64,000 nucleotides of DNA, taken from assembly GCA_044892505.1 (NCBI GenBank), contig CM097882.1:309194001-309258000 (forward strand), read 5' to 3'. Source of the DNA: Schmidtea nova (Eukaryota). Shown piece by piece: positions 5,221-48,968 of the stretch; within the stretch, counting starts at the first letter, position 1; each line of letters starts with the position of its first letter. Under the pieces are notes generated by a model. The model was not told where the DNA came from, made no database searches, and saw only the letters and a list, made by a program, of their open reading frames with translations. Both the position numbers and the translations under genes were made by a program.

Positions 5221-5549
5221 ATGTTTCAATCATTAATATTAAAGGCGATAAATTTTGCTGCTATTAAGCATTCAAAACAACGCCGAAAAGATCATGATGC
5301 TACACCTTATATTAATCATCCTATTGGTGAATTAAATAGACATTTTATGAGTTATTAATGTACAATATAGGTGTAGCTTACATACTAATGGAGGAAGGAA
5401 AAATAACAGACATTGATGTTTTAATAGTTAAACTGTTATCTAATAAGGCTTATTTAATTAGTAATAGGTGGCTTTGCTTCACGATACTGTTGAAGATACC
5501 GACACTACTTTTGAAGAAATAGAAATTGAATTTGGTAAATCGATAGCAG
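5221..5549 (+). CDS. HDDC3: HD-domain ppGpp/NADPH phosphohydrolase MESH1, exons 1-3 (5221-5326, 5371-5426, 5468-5549)
   Basis: Spliced translation: [81 protein letters not shown]. Introns are GT-AG, 44 and 41 nt, in correct phase. YINHP and LLHDTVED are MESH1 motifs. Confidence 0.93.
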
Positions 5550-6829
5550 GTCAAATTTTGTTTTCTAATTTTATATTCAAACATTGTTTTGAAAATATCT
5601 TTTTAACATTATGTGCTCAATGCGTCATGGGACGTGTTACCATAAACGCAAATTTCTGTAGCACGGATTTTATAAAATTATTTTATTTTTGCAATCAAAT
5701 GTTAAATTTATAATTGCTTATTTAAAAAAGTAAAATTTTCATTAAATCAAAATGGAATTTCAATAAAAAATGAATGTTTCTCAATTGTTTATATATGATA
5801 TTCTAAGATTTTTAATACGAATGAATTATTTTATATTCAAACTCTTATAAACTGAAAGTGTTTATTTCTTAGCTATCACACTGTATATTATACTTACATA
5901 AAATTTCTCTTACACAAAATTTTTGTTTTGTATTATAGGTAACTAGATGTTATTTTTCTATTTAATAAAAAGTGTTATTTTCTTAATTTAAAAAACTATC
6001 CATATTGTTGGTTGTGCGTGGTGATTTATTTAAATCTGCAGATGATCTGACCATCACTTATCTAGGGTCACGACAAAATACATAAAAAGCTTTTTGCCCG
6101 AATGCCCGTAAATACCCTTGATACTGCATATGTCAGACGAATGTGAATCAGCAAGTGAGCGTCTGTGTTACAACAATAAACCAACGAATTTAAATAATAA
6201 ACTGTATTTATACGAAAGAAAAGAAAACACTACTCACGGTGAATAATAACAAATGCCTTCTTATTTCAATTCGATTTTTTTTTGAAATTTTTCTTTTTTC
6301 TAGTACACTTAATTTTTTGTTAATCTCCAATTAAAATCTTGGTTTTTTGAATTTATATTTTGCTGGGTTCATGGAGGGGTTAGATGAAAAATGCTCTAAC
6401 AATGACTAGGGATCCCTCATCCATGATCATGCATAAAATTGCAATTCTACACTCAAGCGCCCTTGACTACTTCCCTATATAATCAAGTTGGTGATGCGCA
6501 GGGTGGTTAAACAATGATGGGCAGGTGAGCACTATTACTAGTACTACTCCCCATTTATGTTTACGGGTTCATTGCTGCCGTTAGAAGGACTTACGCTCAA
6601 ATCATCCGCTTAGGTATTCCGCAATAATCTTTTAGAAAATTTATCTTCAACATCGCTTATTCTGCATGACGTATTTCAACAAAATGCTCGCTTAATTATT
6701 CATTTGCCTTTATTAGGTATTTTGTGAGATGAGTTTATAGTTTTATTCTACAGTTATCTAATTATTTGTCAAGTTAATTAAATCACTTTAAATGAACAAT
6801 AACAATTTTAAGATAACACGAAAATTTAT

Positions 6830-7426
6830 TCAATCTTTAATTAGTTCAGTGAAAACTCCAGCTGGGGGAAAGATTTCCGTTAATAATTCCCCTTCGGTCA
6901 TTTGATGCAGGCCATCTACTTGGCTCTGTAATCGTTGGGCAAATAGTTTCCTTTGCCTTCGCCGTTTCTGCCCAATGCGCTTGCGTTTCTGGTGCGCATT
7001 TGCAGTTGAGGTGGATGGATTTGTTGCCGGAACCGGCTCGTTTTGGCTTCCGATTAGATCAGCGACGTCCGTGCCAATCGAGTTGACGATCTTCTTTTCC
7101 GATGTCCATTCCTGATATGTAACGGGACGGATTTGATCTCTAAGTTCTTTCTCAATATAGGAGGCAGTTACAGAATGGAGGCATTTTCGAAGCTCTATTT
7201 TAGTAGCCTCCCATTCCATTTTATAATCTGCTGCAGTTTGCTGGGCACGTTCGGTTTTACTGATTTGCTCCTTCATCCTAGCCGGAGCAAACCAGCTTTT
7301 GCGTAAATATGTGACCTGCGCCTCGGCTTTGACTAATTGCGCTTTGAGGAGACCCAATTCCTTGTCCTGGGCTCTCCGGATCCGCCACATCTTTTCTAAC
7401 TCCCTTTGTGCCAGATCGGTATTCAT
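6830..7426 (-). CDS. Family ORF B, 198 aa: coiled-coil-like N-half and Arg/Lys-rich C-terminal patch; unknown function
   Basis: Intact ORF. Motifs WFAPARM, TKIELRKCL, QIRPVTY and KRKRIGQKRRRQ recur in copies C, D, E, F, G and the 36 kb fragment. Confidence 0.8.
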   Translation of the reverse strand: MNTDLAQRELEKMWRIRRAQDKELGLLKAQLVKAEAQVTYLRKSWFAPARMKEQISKTERAQQTAADYKMEWEATKIELRKCLHSVTASYIEKELRDQIRPVTYQEWTSEKKIVNSIGTDVADLIGSQNEPVPATNPSTSTANAHQKRKRIGQKRRRQRKLFAQRLQSQVDGLHQMTEGELLTEIFPPAGVFTELIKD

Positions 7427-7620
7427 TCTACAATTGATGTACTATAATTACTTTTGTCACTTTATGGTTCAATTATGTGTAAAATTAAAAACCGGAATAC
7501 ATGATTATTAGGATTAAGAACGGGGTCGGTTTAGCAATACAGAACAAAGAAAAAACTCAAAACAAAACCACTGATGAACATTAATATTTTTACTCAGAAA
7601 CAAATTATTGTCAAAAATTG

Positions 7621-8100
7621 TTATCGCCGAAATAGGCTGTGCATCTCGTTGTTTATCGGCATCTGACGAAGGCGAGCCCAAGAGAATGAAGGTTGCCCTT
7701 TCCGGCATTCCTTGCCGAATGGTTTCCGCGGCAAAAACTCGTGCAGGCCCAATTGACACAATTCTCGGCGAGGGATATGTCCCCAATAAATTATACGGCT
7801 CGCTCGTCCTGCTGCGTCCTTTATTACCACGATCATTTGGCCAAACTTGTTTGAGTAAGGCCTTTGGGAAATTGGCCAGTTCGGTCCTCCACGATAGAGT
7901 ACTTGGTCACTTCCTCCTGTCCATATCGAAAACGGGCATTTTCGACCAAACCCATGTCTCCACTTGAACATTTGAGCGTTGAGGGTCCGCAATATCGGTG
8001 CCGGTAACTCCTTGAGTTGGGAGACCGTTTCATTGTCTGTATTCCATCGTTCCCAATTCCGCATTTGAGTCAATTGGTTCATAATCTCGGCTGTCGGCAT
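7621..8100 (-). CDS. Family ORF A, 159 aa; unknown function
   Basis: Intact ORF. Motifs LKxLP, KWR, KCPF, YRGGxxW and IYWxHIP recur in diverged copies. Confidence 0.8.
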   Translation of the reverse strand: MPTAEIMNQLTQMRNWERWNTDNETVSQLKELPAPILRTLNAQMFKWRHGFGRKCPFSIWTGGSDQVLYRGGPNWPISQRPYSNKFGQMIVVIKDAAGRASRIIYWGHIPRRELCQLGLHEFLPRKPFGKECRKGQPSFSWARLRQMPINNEMHSLFRR

Positions 8101-9258
8101 CTATATTACTTTATTGAATATAAACCATAGGATTTAACGGAGGAAATTTGTTGGACAATTTATTGATACCGCGTATAATCACAAAATTTAATTTAAAATA
8201 AGATTAATTTTATTTATCTTCGCCGTGATCTACCACGGTCGGAATAAAAAGTTCATAATTAGTCCTGTGCTATATACAGCATTCAGGAATTATAAAATTT
8301 ACTTTCAGAAAATGATTTTCCGCGCTATATACAGCGATCGGACTAGCTATTAGATAATTCCGCGTCATGTGCGACGATCGGTTTATTTTTAAATATTTTC
8401 AACTTGGTTTAGATTCCCCACTGCATTCCACCGCGATCGGAATTTATTTATCGGATGATCGTGACTGTGATGTGATTTTGTCTGTATTATCTAAATCAAT
8501 CTTATCGAGTCGTACTTTGACCCGTAATGAAATTCGAAATTCGATCGATTTGAATACCATTTTTCTAATTTAGATCGTCTCGCATATGCTCCAGAATCTC
8601 AAATTTTCACCCTTTAAGCTTAGTACTTGGGAGGCTAATACCTGACTTTCCTTCGGTGCTGCATACCTTCTGGTAGCTCTTTCCGCCTTTCCTACTGTGC
8701 CCCACGCTATGCCCTCTGTGCAACCGACTATGCGATATTTTAATTTTAGTTCGAAATTCGTCGAAAAATTTTACAATGCATTATGAAAATCTTTATCAAA
8801 TAACTAAGCATGAATCGAAAACCATTAGTACTAAATTAGCATCTTTACCCGTTCTCGAATTATGTTCACAAAATTAAAAATTACAAGAATAAAAAGGTTG
8901 AACCGCCATGTGAGACCGTGAGGCCCCACAACGACGACTCGGACTCCCTTGCCGCGTGAGCAGCCTAGGAAGTATAACTATATACATAGTTAAATTAAAA
9001 TATTAAAATAAAGTAAATTTAAAATATAAAATTATAATTGAAGAAAATCATGGATACATTAACATCATAAAATAAAACAAAAATAAAATATTACGTTCCG
9101 TACTTGAATGTATTATTGAATGTTTCCTCGGATTTGAAGTACCTCTGGTTCTCGAAAAATCGTTCGGTTAAATTTTAGTAATAAAAATAGTTCTTAGAAT
9201 CAAAGTTTAGTCTTGATTGTAAGTTTTGATAACAGTTGAGTTATGATTTTTGGATCGG

Positions 9259-9293
9259 TATTTATACTGATCCGTCTGGTTGGATTGACCAAT
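9259..9293 (-). promoter_or_regulatory. CCAAT box plus TATA box of copy A, pointing toward ORF A and ORF B
   Basis: TATAAATA on the minus strand at 9259-9266 and CCAAT at 9289-9293. The same 21-22 nt gap is seen in D (39571-39604), F (63769-63803) and G (30594-30625). Confidence 0.6.
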
Positions 9294-10249
9294 CAGGATC
9301 AGACCGTCCATCAAAGTATTTTTATTATTTTATTCTAACCTAAACATTATTTTGTTTCCTTTTCCGGTTTCTCGCTGGGTGATCCTGATTTTTCGAGTAA
9401 TTAATTAATTATTTGCACTATTATTTTATTTAATTCTATCTTTTCTTATTTCAGGCCCCCTTTTGTTGTTGTTTACCGGTTTATTTTCGAAAATTCCTTT
9501 TACTGAAAATTTATCAAATATTATTTGTCATTTGATTCTTGTTTTTAATTTGTTTTTATTGTTATTTTTATTTTTATTATTTCTTTATTATTTCATGTTT
9601 TCGCTCTTTTATTGTGTTTTTAGGTGATTTGGCGGGCCCAACAATTTTATAGTTTCTTTCAAATCTTTTTAAATTTCAAATTTTCTACCGTAATTTTCTG
9701 ATCCAATTTAATTTAATTTTTGTTTTCTTTTTAACCTTGTTTTGAAATTGGTTGAATGATAATAATGATAATTTTCAATTTTCTTTAATTTAGATTTTAA
9801 ATTTATAATTATTCTAAATTTTGTGATTAAAATTCCTATAGTAATTAGTTTACTATAGGAATTTATTTTGAATTTCTATCGCACGGCGATTAACCAAACT
9901 AAAAATAATAATAACAATAATAAAAAAATGAAGGGGGGGGGGCTAACCATTCATAACAAAGATATTTAATGCCGAGTGTTAACATAGTGACAATAAGAAA
10001 TTCCTGTTTGATAATTAAGACAACGGGTCTGATCACTTCGCTAAATTTATATCTCGTGGATTCACACTGTTTAGTAATTAGAAAATTATTCCTCCCCATT
10101 CTTCAGTGTCACTGATCATTATCTAATTCTCATACACTTTATAGACAGTTAAATGATATTAATTTTTTTAAACAATAAGAGCTGAGATGAAAACACATTA
10201 AATGAACAAAACTATAATTGTTGAACTACTACACTATGAGATGCACACA

Positions 10250-10530: not shown

Positions 10531-10593
10531 GCATGTCTAGCATACGACGTTTTTAGTCACTTCCAATGGCTTTGACACCTGCATCACGTTTGT

Positions 10594-11040: not shown

Positions 11041-11386
11041 GACCTTATGTGATATAGTAACTTAGGAAATGACTTTAAATTTTGAGTCAATTTCCTAAGG
11101 AACAACAATAGATCTAAATCGTAAAGAAAACAAAAATTAAAATTAAAAGAAAAATTAAGAAAGAAAAATAAAATGTGTGATACTAAAAATATAAAGACTT
11201 ATGTATTATAAAATTAAATTGACTATTATGAAATTTTTATTTGTTTAAAATCGTGAATGCTTTTTTTGTGATACTTGTAAACTTTTTGAAATTTGATTAA
11301 AAATACAATGGTGTTTAAATAATTACTGTCATTGAAAAGGTTTTCATTAATTTAAAAATCGCTTAAATTCAAACAATAAAATTGAA

Positions 11387-12255
11387 ATGAATCCAGATTT
11401 AATTTAAGTACTTTAAAAAGTTTGTCAGTTATATTCCAACGGTTTTTGAATCATATGATACATCAAGAGTTATCATTTTGCAATTTGCTCTATCTGGTCT
11501 CGATTTGTTAAATCGCATTGATGATCTCTCGCAATCAGATAAAAATGAAATAGTTGACTGGATTTGTGAGCTGCAAATATTAAATTATCAAACTGGCCGT
11601 TTAGAGGGATTTCGAGGTGGATTTTTCCCGAGTAATTGTCATCTCACAAACCAGATTATATGTCTGGTCATGTAACGATGACCTTTTCGTGTTTAGTTTG
11701 TTTGATGATTTTTGGTGATAATCTTAGTCGAGTTGATAAAACTGGCATTTTAAAATGTTTTAAAAATTTGCAAAATTCTGAAGAGGGCTGTTTTTGTGCG
11801 GCTCTTGACTGCCCAGAAGCAAACGTGAGATTTATATTTTCTGCTTTAGCTTCATGTGCAATTATAAACGATTTCAGCACAGTAGATGTTAATGCTGTTG
11901 TGTCGTTTATTTTGAAATGTCAAAATTATGATGGTGGGTTTCGTCAGAGACCTCGTGAAGAAAGTCACGGTGGCTCCACCTATTGTGCAATAGCAAGTTT
12001 AAAGATTCTGTCAAAATTAGATCTTTTGTTCCCTGAAAATTCTAGTAAAAGGAATTTAATGCTTCGGTGGTTAATAAATCGTCAGTACGAAGGACTTCAT
12101 GGAAGACCGCATAAGGACGACGATAGTTGTTATACATTTTGGATAGGAGCCTCATTGAAAATGCTTGGCTATGGACATTTAATAAATTTCCCTTCTTTGT
12201 TTGATTACATTGAGTCTACTTATGAAAATCTGGCCGGTGGATTTTGTAAATTGAA
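11387..12255 (+). pseudogene. PGGT1B: Geranylgeranyltransferase type I beta subunit, C-terminally truncated
   Basis: Motifs [56 protein letters not shown] and GGFCK. There is a +1 frameshift near 11405. A second frame change near 11630 is explained either by a frameshift or by a 23-nt GT-AG intron. The C-terminal repeat region is missing. Confidence 0.85.
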
Positions 12256-12269
12256 GAACTTGGGACATT

Positions 12270-12580
12270 CATTTGGTGATATCTATGAGATCGTTGTGAA
12301 AAATGCCGAAACTCTAGACAATGCTATTGATTATTCCGGATTTAAAACGCTGGAAAGGTCTTATCTCTTAAGAATTGCTGAAAAGGTCGTAGAACGACCA
12401 CAAAACATGTTCATGAGAGCAGCTGTTGGAATATACAAGGATGATAATGAAAGTGCAATTGAGACTTATAACTTAATGTCAGAGAAATGGTTCATACACG
12501 CTTCATCGATACTGTTTATTGCAGAATTGAGATATGGACAACCTTCCAGTTGTTTTCTACTGACAATGAAAGATGACTGC
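12270..12580 (+). pseudogene. RRM1: Ribonucleotide reductase large subunit fragment, fused in frame to PGGT1B
   Basis: [11 protein letters not shown]...[16 protein letters not shown]...[17 protein letters not shown]...[11 protein letters not shown] matches the class Ia RNR R1 segment. It has a short internal deletion and a degraded PTLFNAG motif. Confidence 0.88.
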
Positions 12581-12800
12581 CTTTCTTTTCGTCATATAAT
12601 GGTTTATCCAACAGTGTGGTAACCAGAATCATCTGCATCTTGACAGATATTTTCGTAATATTAAAAAACTTTTGACATTCTTTAATGAATTCTTCCAGGT
12701 TATCGTCTCTGTGAAATCTTTCTGGTAACATCCTGTCAATCAATAGGTTTGTTGGCGTGGTCGCCATATTAGCAGCAACGATATCGAATTCATTTTCTGT
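12580..12800 (-). pseudogene. Gypsy-like gag N-terminal fragment
   Basis: LPERFHRDDNLEEFIKECQKFF resembles the N-terminal gag helices of the other gags in this window. It abuts the end of the RRM1 piece. Confidence 0.5.
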
Positions 12801-14454: not shown

Positions 14455-15299
14455 GACTAGACCAATATATAATTAATAATAGAACAATATAAACAAAATA
14501 AGTCACTTGGTTACTGATGGGTATTATATCTTATTTTAGTCCTTCGTTCTTTTGCATAATCTTAATTTGTCCACTAAGTACCCGCTTCTAAGTTACGTTG
14601 GAACTGTAACTCAATTTGTGGATGTCTGTAAAAATTGAGCTCCTTTGCCGAAACTGTAATTTTCTTGACTTACAATAGGTAAAACACTATCGTTAGAAGT
14701 TCTGTTGGAGTAGTGGGAGAGTCACCTCCTAGCTTCTATTGTTACTATTTTTCAAATCAGCTCTCTCAATCGTATTAACTCCGATCGTTTCCACTTCTTA
14801 AGTTAAGTTGGTAAAGTGGGTCAGTAGTCAATGACCTGCTTCAGTAGTGAGCTCGTCTCGAATTTTGCATCTGTAGTCACCATTTAATTTACTATATCGT
14901 TAGAAAAAATGTGCGCGTCGTGAGTTGCTTTCTATTATGTAATCTCAACCTTACCATAAATAATATTGTTAAGTTCGTATAGTGGGTTACAAAATAACAC
15001 AGATGTTGGACTCAATACAATGTTGTGTTTATAATATTTATTTACCGATAAATAAATAACTCAAAATGACTTAAAAGGCTTTATTGAATATATTTTGCTC
15101 ATATCCGTTGCTAAGACTGCTGGAACTATTGCTGCTAATTTGACTACTATGCTAGCTGTAAATATATAAATTTCATTCGTAGAATGCTTACATTTTGTAT
15201 TGGATTTACTATTTATTTTACTATTAATTACTGATTTGCTCCACGAGTTGGAACTGCGACTCATGGGTGGTTGACATTTTCGCCTTGAGCCTCCTTCAT

Positions 15300-17500
15300 C
15301 GTGTTGGGCAAAAACTGCAAATTGTTTTAATAAAGCAGTAACCCCATAAGTAGAGAGCGCGCAAGATTCAATTTTAACCCAAACACCCATTAGAAACCGA
15401 AGCGATTAAGTGAAAAACGTCAAAAAGGTGAAGTGGACTCAAGCACATCAACCAGTAGAGAACGCGCTAGCTGTGAATTTGCAAGTCCTTGCACTGAAAC
15501 CTCGAGAAAAATTAAAAGTCGTCAAGAGAAGAACGTTTGAAAGTTAGAATAGGCGGAAAACCCATTAAAAATGCCCATTAAGAACAGCATTGTGTCATAA
15601 AACTTCAGTGCAGAAAAATTAACAAAATTTTAGAAGAAAATTGTGATTTTATCATAAAATTTCACATTAAAGATAAAAAGAACTAATCTTGATCGAAATA
15701 TAGCAAATTAAATCAATTTGAATAAATTTTGATTCAAAAATAAAAATTTTGGATTAAAAATAAATTATTTATGGTTTATTAAAATTATTACATAAAAATA
15801 TTGATTTAATTCGGCGGAAAATTATTAGAATTAATTTAGAAAAATTAAAAAGAACATATTAGAACAATTTGTTTTACTGCATTAGTGAAGGTAACACACA
15901 ATCGGTGGTATATATACCGCCATCAAAATGGCAAGAATCAGAATTTTGAATTGGTGTAAAATCTTGACTGAAAGTTTGAATTTTATTTTGAACCAGAATT
16001 TTCCGGAAGAATTTGTGTAATGTAAGTAACATTTTCTTATTCGGTGCGGGGTCATTGAACATCATGCCCCTTCAATTACCCCGTACCCGGTATTATTTTA
16101 TTTTGATTATTGTTAATCTTATATTATTGTTATTATTTTTATATTATTATCATCAGTTTTATTTATTAAACAAAATATTAAATGAATGTTATTTTTTTTT
16201 ATTATTTGAATTTAACCATTTCAAAATGTCATAAATTACCAGATTGAACCACAATTTATTTTAAATAATATTTATTGTATAAAGATAAAAATAATAATTT
16301 TTTTGTTTGCTTCCATACCCCTTGAAACCTGTTTCTGGCTTTGTGCCGAGTGGGTGGAAGTAGCCTGAGCGAATCGCTGGTTTGATTCGTAATCGATCAG
16401 CCCATATTTCCGACTTCAGGTGATACGCCCAAACATCCATGATCACTTCATCCCAACTGGGGAACAGTGGCTTGGCCAAGGGCAAGGTGTTATATTAATG
16501 ATTTGTAATTTATAGTAGTGTAGTTTATTTGAATTATATTTTTAACATAATGTGCACTTAAAACCTGATACTACATAAAACGCAAATGTCAATTCATCCA
16601 TCAATGTCTTTTCCATTATGTAATTTATCCGTACAAGAATATTCTACTCGTCATTCGCCTTCACTCTCACAACAATTGTCATCTTATCCGAAAACACAAG
16701 TTAAATGGAAGCTAATATTGAAAAGAAAATCGTTCGAAATAATGCTCAAAGCTGATAAAATGATCACGAAACGAAACGAAATATGGAGACAATTATTGAT
16801 TGATTTGAATTAAACCTCATTAATTATCTAAATAATTTTTCTCCAGTGAACCTTGCTTTCGGGAGCCTGAAGTACCATATTACGAAAAATTTATAATGAA
16901 AAAATTATAAATATAGAATTTTTCTTAGAAATTTTTGAATCAAATTGTATCGAATGCATGAGAATTTTAAATCAAAATTAGTATTGGTATATTAAAAATT
17001 TTCATTTTATAAAATTCCCAATTCAAGATTTCGTAGAAAATTTACAATTAATATATTTATCCTTAAATTATAAAAATTCGAATTCAAAAATTTATATTAT
17101 AAAATTGGAAATTTTATTATTATCTGACTCTTAAAAAGAATTATAAATTTAAAATTTGTAAAAATTATTATAAAATTATTGTTATTATTTTAATTTTGAA
17201 AATATTTTATGATTTGTGTATTATTTTATAAAATGCTCCCTAAAATCACCTACAACCCCTATTTGCAAGTCATAACACCCATTCTATTCAATTACATCAT
17301 CCATACTAATACCACATGCAACATTCACTTAAATACAACACACACTACCACATTTCAATCAATAGGATCTTCTATGCTAAATAATACAATAAACAATACA
17401 TCCACTCACCAGCATACGCAACGTGATTTCATCTCACAGTATTCACTAGCATCATACATCCAGACAACCCCCATAAGTAATCATACAATCACATCCATTG
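15300..17500 (-). repeat. Unit H2, inverted copy of the H1 interior; boundaries uncertain
   Basis: Long stretches are reverse complements of H1, e.g. 15860-15930 vs 3645-3720 and 16330-16520 vs 2890-3090. Confidence 0.8.
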
Positions 17501-36074: not shown

Positions 36075-36780
36075 AACTGGGTTTTTTGTCAAAAAACACA
36101 TTGGAAGGATCTTGGTGATCAACTCCGATTCGGTCAGGTCGTCTAGTCGGTCGACTTGATTTTTCATTTGTTGGGCAAATAAATTCTTTTGCCTACGCCT
36201 TCTTGCACCAATGCACTTGTGCGGCCCTGATGTCTTGTTCGATGCCTCCTCTGGCTTGTTTCCTCTATTTTGGTCGAATCCGACTTAATCGTTTGTATCC
36301 GTGCTCATTGAACAGAAGATCTTTAATTTGGCTTGCCGATTTTGTAACCCTTCGGTGATGGGTTTCCCTCGCAAGCCAGAGATGGAGAAACGGCCCATTT
36401 TCAGTTCCTGACATTTCCGAAGTGGTCGTGTGGAGCTACCAACTTTAACTCGAATTTTGAAACTCTGGTTGTGGAATGTGCTCCCAGTAGATCACCTGTT
36501 GGGGTCGCCCGATTTGGTATTTGATGAGAATCATCAAACATGCATATTTATTAAAGTAGCTGTTGTCCGTTGAGATCAGATAATTCATCCCTCCTCGATA
36601 TCGGATCTCCTCGAGGGGATTCTCCATTATGGTGAAGGGACACTTAGAGCGGAATTCCTGGCGCCATTTGCATATTTTTGGACGTCGATTGTATGTCGGA
36701 TCGATGACATTAGGTTTTTAAGCGACTTGATTAACCTCAGCTGCTGTACCTCGTATCTCTCCTTGGCTCAAATTCGCCAG
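36075..36780 (-). pseudogene. Internally deleted family fragment joining ORF A to the C-terminus of ORF B
   Basis: KWRQEFRSKCPFTIM...IRYRGG...VIYWEHIP, then CIGARRRRQKNLFAQQM...LTESELITKILP. Confidence 0.75.
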
Positions 36781-37546
36781 TTATTCTCATTGTCTTTCTC
36801 CAAAGTGCATTTTTTGTCCATTTTCTTATAAAATTCATTGGCATCAATACATTGTTGATCATTAACCTTGGTTATCAACGCAGTTCACCCTGCTGAAAAC
36901 TTTCATTTATGTTATTTCGTCTTACTAAAATTTATTTTCAACGATGCTCTCTGTTATAATAGTCTCATTTGTCCACGAGCCTTCCGGCCCCTCATATTAC
37001 CTCCTGGATCTCCATGATGTGCAGTCAAAACAAAATCCAAAATTTTTTACATCTCCACCTGAAAATTCTCTGTCGTGAAATCAGACTCAACTATCAAGTT
37101 TATCTCTGAAATTACCCTGGCGTAACATTGCTGGTTTGTTGGTTGATGTTTAACAAGGGATTTTGTCTGATGTTAATATTAGGGCAATTCCACCATCATA
37201 AAAATATTCTCCCTGCTGATGCCAATGACTCGCCTCTAATTGCTCATCATGTTGGTACTGCATCCAGCGTTGTAGTCTAATAGGGCAGGTGAGCAACCTT
37301 GGCGGTTACCATTTCCTTGTTAGAGCTACGGGTTCACCACTGCCGATAGAAGGCCTGTGTGGATTTATTTCGGTCCCAATTTTATACCTTCACTATATTT
37401 ATTTACTACGACTCACATTCTTTATTCCTCCGGTTCTCGTCATATATTTTATTTAATTTTCTTATATTACATCGTTCCTTATTTATGCAGACTATCCAAC
37501 ATTCATTTCATCATACAGGAAGACAAGTCATGTTCAATACATATAT

Positions 37547-38111
37547 TCAACCTAATAACACCGTGGTATTGATGACGTTCACTAGCTGCTTCTCCGATAA
37601 GCCGCTTAGCAGATCTACCTCTATTCTTAGCCTTTCCGCGTAGGCCCTCATTTCCCTACGACGCTTAGCTCCCAATCAATTTCTCTTTTTCGTCCTGGAT
37701 GACAATGCGTCTACTCTCGGCGGTAGCGGTATCACTCTTTCATTGAGTGACGTGAGAACTTCCTGGGTTTGCGTCTCCATACTCCTATGAGTAGGAGTCA
37801 TCCAGCGATCAAACGTGCTTGCCCTGATTAGCGGTTTTAATTGTTGTTCGATGAACTCTTTTGTAGTCGCCCTCAGGCAACGATTTAATTCCAATCGGAC
37901 AGCGGCTGTCTCCCGAGCCTGCTCCTCCAGCGCTCTCTCGGCGTTGTTGAATCTCTTTCACCTTCTCGGGGCTGAACCAGGCCCTTTTCATTGAATCGAT
38001 CTCTACGTTTTGTCGATTTATGTAGTGTTCCAATAATCAGATGCGCATTTGCAGTCGTCGGCGTATACGCTTTTCGTCAACCGGTCCATCTATAATTTGA
38101 ATGAGGGTCAT
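37547..38111 (-). pseudogene. Copy D ORF B, with stops and a frameshift
   Basis: AWFSPEKV, RLELNRCLRATTKEFIEQQLKPLIR and GAKRRREMRAYAERL are recognisable. Confidence 0.75.
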
Positions 38112-38324
38112 GTTAAAACTAGCTTAGTCGTTTAGCCACACCACGCACCTCTCTTGGTTCATTCATCAGGTCATTGGGTTAACAACTTCTCAACTCATCA
38201 GTCACCTCAACATCCAACATCAAGTTAGACAAGTCAGATACAACAATCGATTTATTTCAAACTATTATGACACAGTACTGATACTCAAATGTTGTCCAAG
38301 TCAACCCAGTCTTTGTCACACGGG

Positions 38325-38807
38325 CTATTTTTTCTTCGGGTTCCGCCTGGCCAGAAGTATTCGAGGTTTTTTTTTTTTTTTTTTTATGCCCCATGGCGGA
38401 TTAGGGTAATGCCGTGGTTCTCCTGTGACGACATCCCGCGGTTGATCCAGTAAGACGAATCCCATCTGTTGTAAAGTACGACCCGGAATGGGTATGAACG
38501 ACAATATCCATCGGGGGACATTTCTCTGATCATCGAATTGAACGAACCATTTCCGCATATAGATACGCGTAGAAGAGTCTCGTAGTGGCCAGGATGAGTC
38601 TCCCTCCCAGCGAATTCTAACCACGTATTGGTCCGGATTCAGATTTACCGTGGAGCCCGTATGCTCCCGTTTCCAATACCGTAAACAATGATTGGCTTTG
38701 GTTTGGATGATATTTGGGACTGGTGAGATTCCTTGTGATTCCTGGAAATTTGATTTCACCGTTCTACGACGACGATTTTTCCTAGATATTGGTAGTCCCT
38801 CGTTCAT
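38325..38807 (-). CDS. Copy D ORF A, 160 aa, with a poly-A run near the C-terminus
   Basis: RIRWEGDSSWP...FVQFDDQRNVPRWILSFIPIPGRTLQQMGF aligns with copy A VLYRGGPNWP...IVVIKDAAGRASRIIYWGHIPRRELCQLGL. Confidence 0.7.
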   Translation of the reverse strand: MNEGLPISRKNRRRRTVKSNFQESQGISPVPNIIQTKANHCLRYWKREHTGSTVNLNPDQYVVRIRWEGDSSWPLRDSSTRIYMRKWFVQFDDQRNVPRWILSFIPIPGRTLQQMGFVLLDQPRDVVTGEPRHYPNPPWGIKKKKKKPRILLARRNPKKK

Positions 38808-40621
38808 GTTTCTCTACAATAAGTTTAACTGATCAATCGGCCTAAACACCCCCACTTCATTCATACTCAACCTGCATCATTCCAATTCTCACGCAATCCT
38901 GCACGCTTATTGATCGCGTCCTCCTGACCTCATTCCGTTTACGTCATACATTCTCAACGTTCGTCATTTCATCGTTCTATCAGCATACTTACATACATGC
39001 CCCTTGGTTAGTATATTATGTTTCCCCACTCAATCTCCATGACCTTAACCGTGGTTAGGGCCTCAGACAACTTTCGTGTTTACTTAATCATTCGTTTATC
39101 GAATTATCTGTCCATGTGGTGTTGTAATGAACTGTTATTTCTCATCTAGAGTCTATGCATGCGGTCATCGATCTGTTTAATCATCTATTCTCTCGTCATT
39201 CATCACATGATCATCTAGCGCCCCTGTGTGCATCCCCTCCCGATCCATTGGTTATTTGAAGCTACGCCGCATCGGCTATCACCCATGAGGTATGGCTCTG
39301 AGAGGCCAAATTTTCACCCGTTGGGTCTGAAGACCGTCGGGACGTCTTCCTATTCCCCATCCAAACCATTCAAGCAAATCATGAGAGTTTCGAAATTAAA
39401 AACAATGTCAATGTATACCTTTTATTTCCAACAAGTTTCACAGGATATAATTGATTACAAAGTGCTTTTGGTATCAGGTTTATACTGGTATAGATAGGTA
39501 CAAAACTTTCTTTACACCAGGTAAAAATGCTGAGTGATTTTGATGCCCTCTTACTGAATTTGGCTGCCGCTTATATAGCCATTGTAGGTTGACGGCTAGC
39601 CAATCAAAATCGTTCTACGACTTTATAATGCGCTGAATTTATTTTATTTTTGATTCTTGTCATTTTTACCGTGGGTGTATTTATTATGAATATTTTGTAT
39701 CGCCAGTATTTTGTTACTGTGTTTCTGTCAAATTTGAGTGGCCTACCCATTCATTTAATGACTCCTACTTGGTTTATTTTGTAGTTGTAATTTTATCTTT
39801 CTACGCTTCACTGCTTTTATTTTCATTGATTTATTCTCCAATTGCTGGTAATTTGCTAGTTATTTTATCTTATTTTTCTTGCTTTTTATGTTAATTTGCC
39901 GGGCCCAACAACGTCGAAAAATCACAGGACCCGTTCCTGGAAAATGCCCATTCAAAAAATACAGAATTTCTGAAAATACCCATCTAATTTCTATAAAATT
40001 TACCACCCGCAAATCTCTCTTCAATGTCTCTAGTACTTATATCTAAAGTGTATGTTGTTTTTGATAACGACCTGTGATTTTCTAGCCTGCTTTTGCTAAT
40101 GTCATCTAGCTTTATTTTAATTCTGTTTTTATGTCTCTTTGAAATTGGACCAGAGCTAGCACTTTCATTTAAACCAGCAATAATCTCTAAATCATGAAAC
40201 TCTTTTTTGAAAGTACATAAAATAGCTTCATGTCAAATTGTCCAGAAGCAAAGTCTCTAATTGCAATTAACAATTATAATTCGTCGCTGGGTCTTTGTAG
40301 CAGGTTGTTACATTTCCCACGTGATTCTTTTATCCCATTGGTTTTGCTGCTCTCAATATTTCGACTAATCGGTATTCTGTTTTTGTTTCGGTTTCCATTT
40401 TCTACAATATTATTTACATTGGATTCTGACGTCGCTTTTTTTGGATTTCTACATTTATTTTTACTCATGAATATACACAATTTTTTTCGCTTTAATTTCT
40501 TTTTACACTGCTGGATGAATGACCATCCAGAAACCAAGAAGCTCAATCCTCCTCTTGTTCATTCGTTCTTTTATTTGTTAAGTGTTTAATTTCTATGGTT
40601 TGCCACTGGTTTGTTTCTTTG

Positions 40622-42585
40622 TGTTGGCTAAAAACTGAAATTTGTTTAAATAAAGTGGTAATACAGTATATAGAGAGCGCACAAGAAGTAAACTTAAAAT
40701 CATGTCACGAGAAACACCAAGTAAAACAAAGTAACAACAAAACACATAAGTAAATAAATAAAACACGTTTAAGAATTAAACTGAACAAAAGTGCTTCAAA
40801 TATACACGTTAAAACACAAATATAACAGAAAAACATCAATTATAGAATACAATTACAAATTTGGAAAAATTAATATATTTTCTGCATTAGATAAAAATAT
40901 AGCAAATTGAATTAAATTAGAAAATACTTTGATTTAAAAGTAAAACATTAGATTAAAAATAAACTAGTCAAAATTTATAAAAACTTTATACTGAAATAAT
41001 GATTCGATTCGAATCCAAATTGAAATAAAGCGAAATTCCCAAATTCAAACACACACAAAGCGAAACAAAATTATAATATAGTCAAACAAAACTGTCCATG
41101 TTTTAACAAAACTCCAATTTCTATCGATTTATTTTCTCCAAAACTACAAATCAAATTTTAAAACATTCTAAATTACAAATCAAAATTTAAAACACATTCC
41201 CCGATTTTCCAATATTATTTAAACAACACTTAAATTTTTTAATTTTACTTTAATAATTACCAAATCTAATTTTTTCTATTATTTTACAAAACAACTATTA
41301 CCAAAAATTAAACTTAATTCCAACAATAATTTTTAAAGATTTAAATTCTAAATCAAAATTAATTTTTTAAAGATTTAAATTGTAAATCAATCGCGAATAA
41401 TATCTTCCACTTTTAGAAAAGAATTTTCGAAATTTATATTATTGTTACTTTCATTTAAATTATCAATTAGAATGCTCAGATCTGTCTCAAAGTCGTGTAT
41501 CGATTTCGAAAATTGATAGAAATTTCCCACCATTTTTCAGAACTCTTTTCTATAATCATGGAAGATTTCCTCGGTAGTTCTGGTATGACCACATGAAAAT
41601 TTCGCGACGGTTCATGAGGAATTACCTCTCGGCAAACAAGCCCTCTCCCGACAAAATTGCAACATCCGGAAAGCAATTTACATTTAAGCATATAAGTATA
41701 TAAGATTTACACAGATTTCGATACAACCATTTTAACGGCTTCAAACTTCCAGGCTCGCCCCATAATCTTTTACACAAAATCAAGCCCCACCTTTAACTAT
41801 TTAATTTTTATTTAATTATTTTTTAAGTAATTTATTAAGCGGGCGCAACCAGTCATCATTTAGTTAACCGTTTCATTCAGCAACATTACATCATCAAATT
41901 ATCACACTGAAAACTGATTATTTAATCCATAGAAGTATATATAATTACCACCTTGCAAATCGCAACATCCCATATTAGAAGTCCTTGCACATCACAACAT
42001 CCAATAACATAAATTTCTTGCAACTGACAATACCCTAATGCATCGATTAGCCTACTTGCAGACTACAACATCCTATATCATAAATTCCTTGCAGCTTATA
42101 ACATCCCCTGTATTTTTATACAACACTTCGAAAATTTATTTTAAAAAATCCATCTACCTATTGTTACAAATTAGATACATCGTATTGCCCATTAACACCA
42201 TAGTACATCCAGAAAACTTACATAAATTTATATTCATGCCTGCTCGAAGAAGAATTGATGATTACAATCAATAACACCGACTTCGTGAACTACCACGTCT
42301 AAGAAAAATTGTTTAGACATCCCCTTTATAATCTCTTCACTCATTAGCATCCAATATACAAATTTTTACATTTAAGAAACTAGTCAAGACTTAACTTAAC
42401 CTTACAAGATCAACATCCACCCATATATCAGGAGGATTTAAGTGGGTAATACTTTATCTTAACCAAGATTTCAATAGATAATCATATCAAGTCTCATACT
42501 ACGGGCCTTGTGATACGTTATTTTTTAACGAGTTGCATGACGATCTATGATGCGAGTCCAATTTAAGCTAATGAGACTAAGAACA
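40622..42585. repeat. Unit H3, related to H1 and H2; possible TGTT...AACA element
   Basis: 40660-40790 matches the reverse complement of 4200-4340. TTTG lies on both flanks of TGTT (40622) and AACA (42585), which could be chance. Confidence 0.4.
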
Positions 42586-42949: not shown

Positions 42950-44231
42950 ATTCTCTTGAAGACAAGACAAATTATTCGCTAATTTCTTAGTTTTTCCCTG
43001 CTATGCCGTGACTCTCAGGAATAGACAAATCTTAAATGAAAAAAAAGAAATGGATCAGTTATGTAAATAAGACGATAAAACTTATCAAATCAGAAAAATC
43101 CAACCGGGAAGAAATCTTGTACAATAAATAAAAGTGATAAATCAATAAATATGAGAATATCTACAATAGTGCAATTAGCCAATCAGATTGTTTGATAGAC
43201 TTATTCCAGAACTTTGATTTAAAGTATTTGTGAGAAATTTTTATATAGAGCATTTAACACAATCATAGTAAAGGGTGTTAATGAAGATCTTTGAACTTCG
43301 TAAATTAATTTCTAGATAACTTTCATAATATTTTTTAACCTAAAATAAAATGCCGTTGCTAAGGTGTCGGTGGAAATTTTAAAGTTGAATTTCTGACAAA
43401 AGTTTTTTATAATTTATAGGACAAAAGAGACAATAGAATTAGGATATAAATAAAGCCTAATTAAATTTTTAACATTAAAAAACAGAAATTTGAAAGATCA
43501 CGAAAATAATAGTTATTTAGTCCAAAATAACAGGCATTGAATATCCCCTAACATATGCATTTTTAAAGGAATATCTGATCTACGAATTGAGTTGTGATAA
43601 TATATTTGAGCATGAGCTTGAGACTAAAATAAATGTGCGAAAATGTTTTTGTCTTGAGAAAGTATAGTGGTTGGATGGAGTAATTGATTTTATTATGCTT
43701 TAGATTTTCATTGGAAAAATTGAGGGAAAATTTATTTGAAAGCGCTGCTGATCACTTTAATCGATACCCGATTTGGATTTAAGATTAGAAAATCAAAAGC
43801 AGGAACACTAGCTAGAACTCTTAACCCTCTTCAAAATGATTGAACTGATTCTGTTTTGTATGTGGCTGGGATACATTTGCTTAGACCATTATTCTTGAAT
43901 GATGCAGTTTAATTTGATGTTAATAAATGTGGATGCTTATTCTGAATCGCCGATTAAAATCCTATTGATTGCTTATATATTAATCGTTGAATAAAAGAAT
44001 CAAACAGGCATTAGACCTTCTACCGGTAGCCATTGAACCCATTGTGACGTTCGGTCAATCATAGTTTCGATTTTTTCGACGCTCACTGTTTGCGGGCATC
44101 CACCCATTTGTTTCGTTACCAACGTTACATTGTGAAGAGCAACAAGATGGTTAAGCTAATGTTTTATGTGTTGAGTTGTTGATAGGAGGCACTGCAACTT
44201 CAAGGTCATATTCACGGTCAACAACCCAGCA
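42950..44231 (+). mobile_element. Copy B2, B1-like with no recognisable ORF
   Basis: 44015-44231 is closely similar to 20095-20311 and ends CAACAACCCAGCA. 43350-43660 is similar to 18805-19140. Confidence 0.65.
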
Positions 44232-44399
44232 TACATTTAGATTCTAACTGAGAGAAAACGAGTAGAAGTGATTCGATATAATTTTTCGTTTGTTTAAAAT
44301 TAAATTTAGTGTCAATGAAGATGATCAAAACCCCAAAAAAGTAAAGGCCAAATCCAACTGAGGACAGGATACAATACTATCATAACGGTCGAATAAATC

Positions 44400-44770
44400 C
44401 TCTTACTCGTGGGCCTCAAACCGTTCCCCGAATCGGTTAGCCGAGAACTAAATAGCCATATGTGGAAATGGCGCAGGGAATTCAAACGCCTAGTCCCTTT
44501 CGGCCCATGGAAGTCACAATAGGCGGAGGAAATCTGGTGGGAAGGATGTCCCATCTGGCCACATTCACGTTCAATTCTCGACGATCCAGGAGCCACCCAA
44601 AATCGGTTCATTTTGTTCTGGGATCAGAATCAGTTACCACGTTAGATGATGAGTTTTCGAGAGATTCCAATCTCCAAATTGAACGCACTCAAAATTATCC
44701 TCTTGTACACTCCTTGAAACGTCCGCACCGGTGAGAGACTACAATTCAAAAACCTCTTTCCGGTTTGATG
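44400..44770 (+). pseudogene. Copy E ORF A, in-frame stops only
   Basis: LKPFPESVSRELNSHMWKWRREFKRLVPFGPW...IWWEGCPIWP...RFILFWDQNQLPR*MMSFREIP. Confidence 0.8.
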
Positions 44771-45302
44771 AAACATGGCGGCAGGAATCCACATGGAGCT
44801 CTAGCATACAGATTTGTGAGATATTTGCCTACCAATCCCTCTTGTGTTGGAGGCATGATCCAAAGGTCTACTCAATTGAAGGAATTCGACTGCAGTCGGG
44901 TGACAACATCCAAAATTTTATCACGGAAGGATAATCTCGCTAACGACAGTTTTTTTATTGTTGTTTGGGCAAATTAATAGTGTATTAGCATTAGTTTCGT
45001 TTGTGCTATTGATATTTTATTTTATTACTACGTAATGATGAGTTTGATTGAGAGAGAAAATAGCTCGATTATATAAGTTCCGTTCACGAACTGTACTAGT
45101 ACTTGAGAATACAGATTTAGGGTACGATTGGTACTAATGAAAAACATAGCGTAGAACTCGAATTTTTCAGTGATAAAATAGAAGGTCCCGTTGTTTCACG
45201 TAGTCAAAGTCAACAGCTAAGCCCGAGGGTAAAAAAATCATAAAAGTACAGAACCCAGCGTAGACATATTTCTCTGAGGTAAATGATAGGAATTTTCTTT
45301 TA

Positions 45303-45875
45303 ATGAGTAAAGAAACAAAAGAAATAAATAAAGCCCATCAGGTGATCCGTAAGCTAAAGAATGAGAATCAATCGTTAAAAAGAAAAATCGCACAACAGAC
45401 TCGTATAAATAAAGAAATGCATCAAATTTGGTTCACGTTGTCCAGCATGAAAATGGTAATGTGAAGAATTGACAAATTGAATCAGGCATTGAGCGATCAA
45501 ACAACCGAATTATCAGCTACCAAGCTCGAGATAAACCGTTGTCTCAGTTCCACCACCACAGATTTTGTATCACGGCATCTACAAGACCAAATACGGCCCA
45601 TCACCTTGGAGAAATGGGTAGCACAACTGCCCTCTACAAAGGCAACTTAGACGGATTCCTCTACAGCAGTCGAAATTGCAACGTTAACGCCAGCGCTCGC
45701 AAAATATCCGTCGCCTACCGGAATTCAGAAGTAAAAGCACAAGAACAGGATGGTAGCAAAGAGTAGACGTGAACACCGAGCTTTCGCAGAGAAATTAGGC
45801 ACTCAAGTTGACCTACTGTGTGGGTTGAATGAAAATCAATTGATCGAACTGATAAATCCGACTGTGTTCATATAA
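45303..45875 (+). pseudogene. Copy E ORF B, 190 codons with three in-frame stops
   Basis: ATKLEINRCLSSTTTDFVSRHLQDQIRPITLEKW...VAKSRREHRAFAEKL. Confidence 0.82.
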
Positions 45876-46275: not shown

Positions 46276-47210
46276 TTGGAAAAGCTACAATAATTAGGTA
46301 AAATATATATTTATTAAAATAAAATTCTTCTTCATTTTGTTGCATTTTGAAAATCTCCTCCAAAATAACTTGGTATTAAAACAAGTTATTTTATTTTAAT
46401 AAATAATTAAATATTATAATAAATATTTATTATCGGAGGCACTACAGTGGCCCCCGCCGAAGTACGCGGAGCGTATGGGGTACTATTGGTGCTGGATGCT
46501 GGTACTGTAGATGTTGGTGCTGTAGATGCTGGTACTGTAGATGTTAGTGCTGTAGATCCTGGTATTGTAGATATTGGTGCTGTAGATGCTGGTACTGCAG
46601 ATGTTGGTGCTGTAGATGCTGGTATTGTAGATATCGATGATGTAGATGCTGGTGCTATTGATATTATTGCTATAGATGCTGGTGCTGTAGAAACTGGTGC
46701 TGTAGATGTTGGTGCTGTAGATGCTGGTGCTGTAGATTTTGGTGTTGGTGCTGTAGATGTTGGTGCTGTAGATGCTGGTGCTGTAGATGTTGGTGTTGAT
46801 ACTGTAAATGTTGGTGCTGTAGATGCTGGTATTGTAGATATCGATGCTGTAGCTGTTGGTGCTATTGGTGTTAATGCTGTAGATGCTAGAGTTGTAGATG
46901 TTGGTGCTGTATATGCCGGTGCTGTCACTTCTGACATCAATTGTAGCGATATGGAAAAAGCTACAATAATTAGGTAAAATATATATTTATTAAAATAAAA
47001 ATTCTTCTTCATTTTGTTGTGTTTTGAAAAACTCTTCATTATGTTGCATTTTGAAAAACTCTTCATTTTTTATCATTTTGAAAATCTCTTCATTATGTTG
47101 CATTTTGAAAATCTCCTTTTCCAAAATAACTTGCTATTAAAACAAGTTATTTTATTTTAATAAATAATTAAATATTATAATAAATATTTATTATCGGAGG
47201 CACTACAGTG
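46276..47210. repeat. Direct repeats (about 46276-46449 and 46952-47210) flanking a 15-nt-period minisatellite (about 46490-46920)
   Basis: Both repeats start TGGAAAAGCTACAATAATTAGG and end TATCGGAGGCACTACAGTG. The core unit is GATGCTGGTRCTGTA. Confidence 0.9.
46407..47066 (-). CDS. Possible Thr/Ala/Ser/Pro-rich mucin-like ORF
   Basis: Open frame with PASTA/PTSTA repeats, preceded by a signal-peptide-like stretch MKKNFYFNKYIFYLIIVAFSISLQ. It may be open only because the repeat lacks stops. Confidence 0.3.
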   Translation of the reverse strand: MKSFSKCNIMKSFSKHNKMKKNFYFNKYIFYLIIVAFSISLQLMSEVTAPAYTAPTSTTLASTALTPIAPTATASISTIPASTAPTFTVSTPTSTAPASTAPTSTAPTPKSTAPASTAPTSTAPVSTAPASIAIISIAPASTSSISTIPASTAPTSAVPASTAPISTIPGSTALTSTVPASTAPTSTVPASSTNSTPYAPRTSAGATVVPPIINIYYNI

Positions 47211-48681
47211 TATATAGATTTTCTTTTATTTATAATTAGTTTAATTCAATTAATAAGGGAAAGGTAGAAATTTAACCCTTAATATAAAATACAAAATGGT
47301 AACAGATTATACTAATTTACTAAAGGAATCTTGAGGACCTGAAATTGCTTGAATTACTATGTTATTGCCATTGCTATGACCTCGACGAAAATTTGAATAT
47401 ATTTTTTTTAAGTTATTAAGAATTTTGTATAATTTTAATTAAAATCACACAGATTCCCCCTCTTAATTCGCTAAATAAATGTTGATATGTTTTTTTGATT
47501 TAATTACACTGTAAATTCAAAACTTATTACAAAGAGACATGAATTGCTGCTCAGATCCAGCAAATATAGGAGTTAAATACTATTGAATTATGGATAACTT
47601 TATTGATAAATAAACGTGTCAGGTCGATTCGTAGTAACATGATTAAAGTCAATAGTATGTTTGGGATATACACACAAAAAACCATTAGTGTTTTGGCATG
47701 GTAACACCTAATAGTCAAATGGAATGATTATTTTGTTTGTTTGGAAATCAAATATTTTGATGGCCACGATTGGTGATAATATTCGTTTTAGAGGTCGCTG
47801 ATCGATTAAACTAACACCCGATCCGACTTGGGGTGAATGAAATAAAAACAGAGACCAATCTTTAAAATTCTTTAATTTTACGTTAGTGCATAGAACTGAA
47901 TGGATGCTGACTCTGGCTGGTAGTGAGTAATTAGAAATTTTTATAAATGTTAGTTAGGCAACGTAAATTTAGATTGTTAAGTTATGATTTTCAGCGTCTA
48001 TTGATATTAATTTTTGATACGCATACGTATCCTTTGATCAAAATTATGAATAATTAGATTTTAACTGCATTGTTACTTGATAAATGATTTATTTACAATT
48101 TACTCGATAAGATTAAATTTTAATTCATTTAATTTATTTTCTTACTAATTCTATTTAATTTGCTAAAACGATGTGTGTCCCCATCGTGTCGTCGTATTAG
48201 TTGTTACTGCACATTTATTGATCGGTTAAAACACTCAAATTTAATTTAATTCTATCTTCTTTTTTATCTCTGAATTTTACTTTATTTCAATGGGGATTTC
48301 TACTATAATTTTTAAAAAAATTTCTTTATTTTCATACTAAGTTTTTCTTCGATAATGCCTTTTTAAGTTAAATATAGTAGCAATTATCTTCCGCATTCAA
48401 TTCTCATGCAGTTCTTCGTATGTAAATTCGACTTGCAATCAAATTGTGTGCTCTCTTTTGAAATGTTTCTTTTTTTATCGTTTTATCCCTGACTTATGAA
48501 ATACGGTTCGTATGCATAATATTTCATGTTTGTACTATGCTTTATTTAGTATTATAAATTTTGAACTATGTTATTTTGGTGTGTATTTTTTGACACTTTA
48601 AAATACAATTTTAATTTCACTTCTACCAGCCCAACAATACTTTGATCTTTAAAAGTTATTAATTCTTAATTAAATTTTTAG

Positions 48682-48968
48682 ATATGGTTAGAGAAGTAAC
48701 TGATGACAAAAGTCTATCTCGGGATGAGAGGAAAGCTGCGCAAATTTCAAATTCTCCTTTCAAGAGTCACCAAGCCAAATTAGTGAAATTAGCTGACAAA
48801 ATTTACAATCTTCGAGACTTAAATCGTGATACACCTATCGGCTGGGATGAAAATCGTGTTGTTGAATATTTTAGATGGTCCAAAAAAGTTGTTGATGGTT
48901 TAAAAGGAACCAACGAATATTTAGAAAATATAATAAATGATTTATTTAAGCAGCGAAACATTTTTTAA
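48682..48968 (+). CDS. HDDC3: MESH1 exon 4 (C-terminal half)
   Basis: [17 protein letters not shown]...[24 protein letters not shown]...FKQRNIF*. The spliced CDS is 531 nt (176 aa), close to the length of animal MESH1. Confidence 0.93.

Follow-up and report, generated by a model that had tools for sequence, protein, structure and literature searches.

MESH1/HDDC3 of Schmidtea nova: a four-exon gene with a transposon-filled third intron of about 43 kb that is probably still spliced

The locus presented here lies in a 64-kb window (the whole stretch of DNA that was analyzed) of Schmidtea nova and is, as judged from its sequence, one intact ortholog of MESH1/HDDC3, the metazoan phosphohydrolase with an HD domain that acts on (p)ppGpp and NADPH. 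We consider it probable (roughly 70%) that this gene has kept an ancestral four-exon plan, that its third intron was swollen by transposons and is still spliced, and that a gene of this form is nothing unusual in the lineage.

Gene model and coding integrity

The gene lies on the plus strand and is organized as follows:

5221-5326, plus strand: exon 1, 106 nt, with the ATG at 5221; 35 codons and one base
5327-5370, plus strand: intron 1, 44 nt, GT..AG, phase 1, a microintron
5371-5426, plus strand: exon 2, 56 nt
5427-5467, plus strand: intron 2, 41 nt, GT..AG, phase 0, a microintron
5468-5549, plus strand: exon 3, 82 nt, with a phase-1 end and the metal-binding motif LLHDTVEDT
5550-48681, plus strand: intron 3, 43,132 nt (186 of them N), GT..AG, phase 1
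48682-48968, plus strand: exon 4, 287 nt including the TAA at 48966-48968; C-terminal half

Exon-by-exon translation yields a product of 176 residues (35+1+18+27+1+94) with neither a stop nor a frameshift, and the codons split across exon joins read GGT (Gly) and GAT (Asp). This bears out the preliminary description of the locus, which had reported an exact phase-1 join restoring 176 residues free of stops and frameshifts, and introns of 44 nt, 41 nt and about 43 kb. The donor of intron 3 is the GT at 5550 (GTCAAA after CAG), and its acceptor is the AG at 48680-48681 behind a T-rich tract.

The product was compared with MESH1/HDDC3 of other bilaterians (human 3NR1/5VXA, Drosophila 3NQW, Saccostrea, Dimorphilus), to which exon 4 is 60-66% and exons 1 and 3 are 64-70% identical; the length of 176 residues compares with 175-179 in these orthologs. 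In similarity searches, which like the Pfam scoring were done exon by exon, exon 4 matched residues 84-176 of the human MESH1 structure (PDB 3nr1) with an E-value of 1.4e-31, and E-values from 1e-31 to 3e-28 over the same residues were obtained for 3nr1, 5vxa and 3nqw. The best match of a MESH1 piece in the protein database was an oyster sequence with 66% identity. Exons 1-3 cover ortholog residues 1-83 in the exon-by-exon comparison, and exon 1 aligns with residues 1-36 including RRKD and TPYINHPI. Expressed in coordinates, ortholog residues 5-83 fall on 5230-5551 and residues 84-177 on 48684-48965, with none missing and none doubled. For the HD_4 domain (PF13328), whose cut-off is 27.2 bits, exon 3 alone, a piece of 27 residues, reached 18.3 bits, while neither exon 1 nor exon 4 was matched; the orthologs bear PF13328 and PF01966.

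In an alignment against seven orthologs all conserved motifs are kept, among them NHPIG, LLHDTVEDT and KLADKxYN. We take the His of NHPIG, the His-Asp and Glu-Asp of LLHDTVEDT and the Asp and Asn of KLADKxYN to be metal-binding or catalytic residues. The joining of exons 1-3 to exon 4 appears to be far beyond what chance could account for, because exon 4 has an E-value of 1.4e-31, the two parts tile the ortholog, and exon lengths and phases are the same as in oyster and annelid.

Ancestral position and contents of intron 3

The exons 2-4 of the oyster (Saccostrea) ortholog measure 56, 82 and 287 nt with phases 1/0/1, which is identical to MESH1 here, and those of the annelid (Dimorphilus) ortholog measure 56, 82 and 281 nt with unchanged phases. 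The four-exon plan is thus common to all three genes, as are the conserved motifs. Intron 1 agrees in position and phase and differs in length (44 nt here, 58 nt in Dimorphilus, 1275 nt in Saccostrea); the position and phase of intron 2 (41 nt) are conserved in both species. While introns 1 and 2 are shorter than their counterparts in Dimorphilus or Saccostrea, intron 3 is far longer, with 43,132 nt compared to 70 nt in Dimorphilus and 343 nt in Saccostrea. As annelid and oyster have the same four exons with the same phases, the 43-kb interval occupies the site of an ancestral phase-1 intron common to annelid and mollusc orthologs.

The following features were found within intron 3:

6341-9460, minus strand: family A, copy 1, a dispersed repeat; ORFs 7624-8100 and 6833-7441 on the minus strand
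11380-12619, plus strand: chimeric processed pseudogene PGGT1B/RNR, on the same strand as MESH1
15295-17332, minus strand: family B repeat, 86-93% identical to 1818-4484 and inverted relative to it
20089-23526, minus strand: family A, copy 2, degenerate; ahead of it a 225-nt piece shared with 44007-44231
25570-25755, no strand: assembly gap, 186 N
28665-29889, minus strand: Merlin-type DNA transposon, internally deleted, with TIRs of about 60 nt and a DDE_Tnp_IS1595 fragment
31284-34688, plus strand: hAT transposon with TIRs and ORFs of 619 aa (DUF4371) and 187 aa (hAT dimerisation)
about 36066-36735 and 37679-38813, minus strand: two family A fragments, from repeat comparison
40615-41011, minus strand: family B fragment, from repeat comparison
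44007-45860, plus strand: family A copy in sense orientation, from repeat comparison
46359-47210, no strand: two direct repeats of 91 nt, 99% alike, which flank 15-nt and 27-nt minisatellites

The interior of intron 3 contains discrete mobile-element insertions. Repeats that can be recognized from the window alone amount to approximately 21 of the 43 kb, or about half. The earlier statement that over a dozen elements or pieces of elements lie here holds, and so does the presence of a same-strand pseudogene, namely the PGGT1B/RNR retrocopy. The neighborhood of MESH1, the one host gene in the window, is gene-poor, repeat-rich and AT-rich, with a background GC of 27-31%. Rfam and tRNA scans of the 64-kb window found nothing.

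Family A is represented by five copies or fragments in the intron. Its ORFs had no homolog in Pfam, the PDB or the protein databases (a 5.8-billion word search and a 1.84-billion HMMER search), and they may not be real genes. The family B partner at 1818-4484 sits upstream of MESH1; the copy in the intron shows 7-14% divergence from it, and for every 106 mismatches there are 13 gap openings. The Merlin-type element is bordered by an 8-bp target site duplication with 7 of 8 positions matching (GAAAATGA/GAAAATGG), and the hAT element by a perfect one of 8 bp, GCAGCACC, at 31276-31283 and 34689-34696. The near-intact hAT gene and the retrocopy, both on the same strand as MESH1, could terminate transcripts early.

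The PGGT1B portion of the retrocopy is intronless, starts with an ATG at 11387, has frameshifts at about 11405/6 and 11657, and continues in frame into part of the coding sequence for the large subunit of ribonucleotide reductase (RNR). We considered whether this ORF is a genuine nested host gene and rejected it, as it is intronless compared to a relative's transcript, carries two frameshifts near its start and fuses two unrelated fragments. In the tree of the PGGT1B parent gene the sequence joins two other sequences and then Macrostomum lignano (95/96 support), which together with the low background GC is consistent with a flatworm source; the branches are long and one named flatworm is included.

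Splicing status and linkage of the two halves

In the course of events that we propose, intron 3 would once have measured tens or hundreds of bases and would have reached its present size of at least 43 kb as DNA transposons, members of an unclassified repeat family and a chimeric retrocopy inserted one after another. Transcription of MESH1 would still run across the entire interval, with splicing at GT (5550) and AG (48681) as in other long flatworm introns. Two microintrons at the 5' end and a long intron towards the 3' end would then represent the normal bimodal architecture of the lineage and no anomaly.

An unlikely alternative, to which we nevertheless assign some weight, is that the gene died only recently, so that its exons are intact and have not yet begun to decay, and the latest insertions block productive transcription or splicing. 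At least two insertions do look young: the hAT element with its perfect 8-bp duplication and long transposase ORFs, and the element with the 99% identical repeats. These two are also the candidates for a disabling insertion. The donor GTCAAA, which we take to be weak by general metazoan standards, is in line with a dead gene, as are the elements on the same strand within intron 3 and the observation that transcripts of PGGT1B from relatives were found and no MESH1 transcript from a close relative. Against it, older insertions have decayed, with frameshifts, stops and 7-14% divergence, whereas 174 whole codons and the catalytic motifs are intact, and the flatworm lineage routinely splices long introns full of transposons. 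Under neutral drift the probability that 174 codons contain no stop falls from 0.37 to 0.20 and 0.05 as divergence rises from 3% to 5% and 10% (indels not counted). Decayed older insertions beside pristine exons indicate long-standing tolerance of a very large intron; this age argument presumes that the divergence between repeat copies postdates insertion. That the catalytic motifs are all intact while neighboring insertions decayed favors, on the evidence of the sequence, a MESH1 that is still spliced. Of the earlier suggestion that an insertion pile-up had recently disabled the gene, the pile-up is confirmed, and the disabling is disfavored by the same contrast between pristine exons and decayed insertions.

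The second point concerns the assembly gap, which leaves 20,020 nt of intron 3 on its left side and 22,926 nt on its right. The gap falls in non-coding sequence at a distance of 20 kb from one splice site and 23 kb from the other, so the reading frame is not at stake. The contigs ending at 25569 and starting at 25756 could nonetheless derive from different loci or haplotypes, each with half a gene. The two sides are joined just by 186 N, an estimated length, and within the window we found no spanning ORF, no repeat copy, no TIR or LTR pair and no overlapping contig ends that would link them. We judge such a scaffolding artefact to be improbable. The halves are exactly complementary, one reaching to residue 83 and the other starting from residue 84; they lie on the same strand and in the right order, and the break falls at an ancestral intron, a result that an accidental joining of unrelated contigs would hardly yield. 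Neither side has any trace of its counterpart in the adjoining 20-23 kb, and if there were two separate loci, each would still need either an isolated half gene or an intron of great length. A search for a further HDDC3 copy had been proposed in the preliminary description; within the 64-kb window no second copy or remnant of either half was detected at the protein or DNA level (chance matches only, E of at least 0.1). Its caveat that the linkage crosses the gap is correct, and weighs less than feared in view of the fact that neither half has a partner within 20-23 kb.

We regard it as very improbable that MESH1 is physically split, with its halves trans-spliced from two transcripts, or that intron 3 is removed stepwise by recursive splicing: flatworms do possess a spliced-leader trans-splicing machinery (PMC6530080) and, where introns of 40 nt occur, an interval of this size is very long, but no sequence feature demands trans-splicing, related genomes as a rule remove their long introns by ordinary cis-splicing (PMC11410931), and the window has a single match to the recursive-site motif AGGTRAGT compared to 2.2 expected by chance, so that ratchet sites (acceptor fused to donor, AG/GTRAGT) on the sense strand of the window are not above chance.

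Intron architecture in flatworms and meaning of the finding

In flatworms, microintrons (<75 nt) cluster at the 5' ends of genes and a broad class of kilobase introns occurs besides; in liver flukes the mode of the long introns is roughly 3 kb (PMC6530080). Schmidtea planarians have genes of up to 380-513 kb, an intron growth attributed to transposons and a GC content of 28-30% (PMC11410931), and small and large intron classes are described for planarians (bioRxiv 10.64898/2025.12.11.693146). Introns 1 and 2 of MESH1 are adjacent and 5'-most, and with 44 and 41 nt they fall under the <75-nt definition of PMC6530080. The gene resembles this architecture in having two such introns at its 5' end, followed by a long transposon-filled intron in AT-rich, repeat-rich DNA, and differs from it in that 43 kb is far above the liver-fluke mode of about 3 kb (PMC6530080). 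Given flatworm microintrons and kilobase introns, and the giant genes of Schmidtea, 1000-fold contrasts inside one gene are to be expected there. The premise of a genome with minimal introns, from which the preliminary description had started, is unsupported because it was based on two introns of one gene; flatworms pair 5' microintrons with long transposon-filled ones.

Giant introns filled with transposons are a feature of the heterochromatic genes of Drosophila (light, rolled and the Y-linked fertility factors). In its sequence, MESH1 shares with these a small conserved coding sequence, introns inflated by nested repeats and gene-poor, repeat-dense surroundings. It differs in that the satellite blocks in its window are small.

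For the annotation of such genomes the locus is a warning: gene finders that allow no introns longer than a limit set below about 45 kb would miss MESH1 or break it in two, and could instead predict a 94-residue product starting at the ATG at 48684. The combination of microintrons with long introns full of transposons has already been described for the flatworm lineage, and in this respect MESH1 opens no new question. It represents a clean example of an ancestral intron, 70 nt long in the annelid and 343 nt in the oyster, that was inflated to at least 43 kb without visible harm to a small housekeeping gene.

Gene model and position of the introns

The gene model of MESH1/HDDC3 was read at both ends and its exons were translated one by one:

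5221-5326 (+), exon 1, 106 nt, ATG at 5221
5327-5370 (+), intron 1, 44 nt, GT..AG, phase 1
5371-5426 (+), exon 2, 56 nt
5427-5467 (+), intron 2, 41 nt, GT..AG, phase 0
5468-5549 (+), exon 3, 82 nt, phase 1 at its end
5550-48681 (+), intron 3, 43,132 nt (186 nt of these N), GT at 5550, AG at 48680-48681
48682-48968 (+), exon 4, 287 nt, TAA at 48966-48968

The product comprises 35+1+18+27+1+94 = 176 residues without a stop, with GGT and GAT as split codons, and the coordinates and arithmetic of the preliminary description were correct. Exon 4 has an ATG (48684) as its second codon.

Exon 4 matches the human MESH1/HDDC3 structures 3NR1 and 5VXA over residues 84-176 (E 1.4e-31) and Drosophila Mesh1 (3NQW) with E 3e-28. 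Searched with its reading frame, 5.8 billion proteins yielded 1226 MESH1 relatives with a top identity of 66% (oysters), among which the source organism's own MESH1 was absent. The single exons are too short to reach the Pfam threshold; the full set of conserved motifs, including GLxGTN, was found in the separate exon peptides. Orthologue residues 5-83 map to 5230-5551 and residues 84-177 to 48684-48965, and to no other place in the window.

Orthologue loci were fetched for the annelid Dimorphilus gyrociliatus and the oyster Saccostrea echinata, and their exon chains were solved exactly.

MESH1 exon lengths, intron lengths and intron phases
Window: exons 106/56/82/287 nt; introns 44/41/43,132 nt; phases 1, 0, 1
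Dimorphilus: exons 109/56/82/281 nt; introns 58/77/70 nt; phases 1, 0, 1
Saccostrea: exons 109/56/82/287 nt; introns 1275/1163/343 nt; phases 1, 0, 1

Judged by this agreement in exon lengths and phases, the 43-kb interval is the exact site of a conserved bilaterian intron. The coding sequence received no insertion.

Contents of the third intron and its surroundings

MESH1 is the one host gene in the 64-kb window, and the remainder on both sides of it consists of repeats. On within-window evidence alone, recognised elements make up half of the sequenced part of intron 3, about 21 kb; unique AT-rich DNA is left for about 0.8 kb past the donor and 1.5 kb ahead of the acceptor.

6341-9460, 20089-23526, 36.1-36.7 and 37.7-38.8 kb (within 36066-38813), 44007-45860: five copies or fragments of family A, an unclassified dispersed repeat
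61107-63971: sixth family A copy, outside the intron
11380-12619 (+): pseudogene, an intronless copy of geranylgeranyltransferase-I beta (PGGT1B) fused to part of the ribonucleotide reductase (RNR) large subunit
15295-17332 (-) and 40615-41011: family B, a second dispersed repeat
1818-4484 (+): inverted family B partner, upstream of the gene
28665-29889: Merlin-type element, TIRs of about 60 nt, TSD 7/8, DDE_Tnp_IS1595 fragment
31284-34688 (+): hAT transposon, TIRs, perfect 8-bp TSD GCAGCACC, ORFs of 619 aa (DUF4371) and 187 aa (hAT dimerisation)
46359-47210: minisatellite unit, a 15-nt array (about 29 units) and a 27-nt array, enclosed by a pair of 91-nt direct repeats, 99% alike

The two hAT transposase ORFs are nearly intact, with one stop between them; the element is probably recent and possibly still active. 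Family A is GC-richer and carries minus-strand ORFs of 130-200 aa (28-64% amino acid similarity among copies), for which no homologue was found in Pfam, PDB, or sets of 5.8 billion and 1.84 billion proteins; one copy adjoins a reverse-transcriptase ORF. Small fragments are common to 10.2-11.0 kb, 26.5-26.9 kb and the window's first kilobase. The inverted family B copies at 1818-4484 and 15295-17332 are 86-93% identical and flank the first three exons of MESH1; a recombination event joining the two would turn the gene's 5' half around with respect to exon 4.

The same-strand pseudogene noticed previously is present. Its ORF starts at 11387 and is called a pseudogene because of two frameshifts near the 5' end (about 11405/6 and 11657). 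PGGT1B joins RNR large-subunit residues 118-228 (approximately) in frame at about residue 214 of the 328-aa ORF, which looks like a chimeric retrocopy of the template-switching type. The two sequences closest to the parent gene show about 88% and 78% identity, and in the tree it joins, together with these, the flatworm Macrostomum lignano (95/96 support, long branches). This grouping and the low background GC (27-31%) suggest a free-living flatworm, possibly a planarian, as the source.

On its downstream side, exon 4 is followed by an ORF resembling gag, pieces of Polinton-type polymerase and a reverse-transcriptase element. Two ORFs at 53497-55762 (-), with pieces of a type-B DNA polymerase (DNA_pol_B_2) and a weak endonuclease VII match, are by their domain matches a Polinton/Maverick-like remnant. 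Three successive long ORFs (585, 257 and 484 aa) lie at 57054-61127 (+), the last alone with a Pfam match (RVT_1), and 51374-51838 holds a 46-nt tandem array (10 units, 90% identity).

State of the gene and linkage of its halves

We consider it most likely, at roughly 70%, that the gene is intact and that ordinary cis-splicing would remove its intron 3, an ancestral intron which insertions have enlarged step by step. Unlikely, yet the strongest competitor, is a recent loss of expression through the youngest insertions; candidates would be the hAT, given its perfect TSD, and the element with 99% repeats (46359-47210), and the donor GTCAAA is weak. Against this, all 174 of 174 whole codons of MESH1 are open and every motif is retained, whereas divergence between the intronic family B copy and its partner is 7-14% with 13 gap openings per 106 mismatches, the retrocopy is frameshifted and most family A copies are full of stops. 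When neutral drift was simulated with the base composition of the interval, exons being treated separately and indels not counted, the sequence stayed free of stops with a probability of 0.37 for 3% divergence, 0.20 for 5% and 0.05 for 10%. The evidence from sequence thus leans towards a living gene, in which a very large intron has probably long been tolerated under purifying selection.

Considerably less probable is a mis-scaffolding of the two halves. The window's sole N run (25570-25755) is separated by 20,020 nt from the donor of exon 3, upstream, and by 22,926 nt from the acceptor of exon 4, downstream. It falls in DNA without coding signal and therefore leaves the reading frame unaffected. 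No repeat family, ORF, TIR pair or LTR pair straddling it was found in the window, and its 1.5-kb flanks show neither mutual overlap nor a match to the rest of the window. Linkage across the gap has indirect support: its two sides hold exactly complementary MESH1 halves, on the same strand, in the right order and broken precisely at the intron. A search for further HDDC3 copies in the window, as previously suggested, gave no second copy and no degenerate trace of the opposite half on either side, all other matches having E >= 0.1. Even a wrong join would therefore leave each half partnerless within 20-23 kb. Trans- or recursive splicing is very improbable; the window shows the ratchet motif AGGTRAGT once, against 2.2 expected.

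Flatworm intron architecture

In flatworms, microintrons (<75 nt) make up about one third of introns and are grouped near gene 5' ends, while introns of kilobase size form a broad class beside them (PMC6530080); small and large classes are also described for planarians (bioRxiv 10.64898/2025.12.11.693146). Schmidtea genomes have a GC content of 28-30% (27-31% in the window's background) and genes of up to 380-513 kb, and their intron expansion is put down partly to transposons (PMC11410931). Seen in this light, a giant intron filled with transposons after two microintrons at the 5' end would be the expected architecture, and MESH1 follows it with 44 and 41 nt, then 43,132 nt. The earlier premise of a minimal-intron genome was over-read from two introns.

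What is new here is a rather extreme instance; the family of the gene, its conserved exon plan and the inflation of introns by transposons were known before. The instance is of modest interest, mainly as an annotation trap: an exon-blind gene caller would output the 94-aa C-terminal MESH1 fragment, starting at the ATG in exon 4, as a separate protein.
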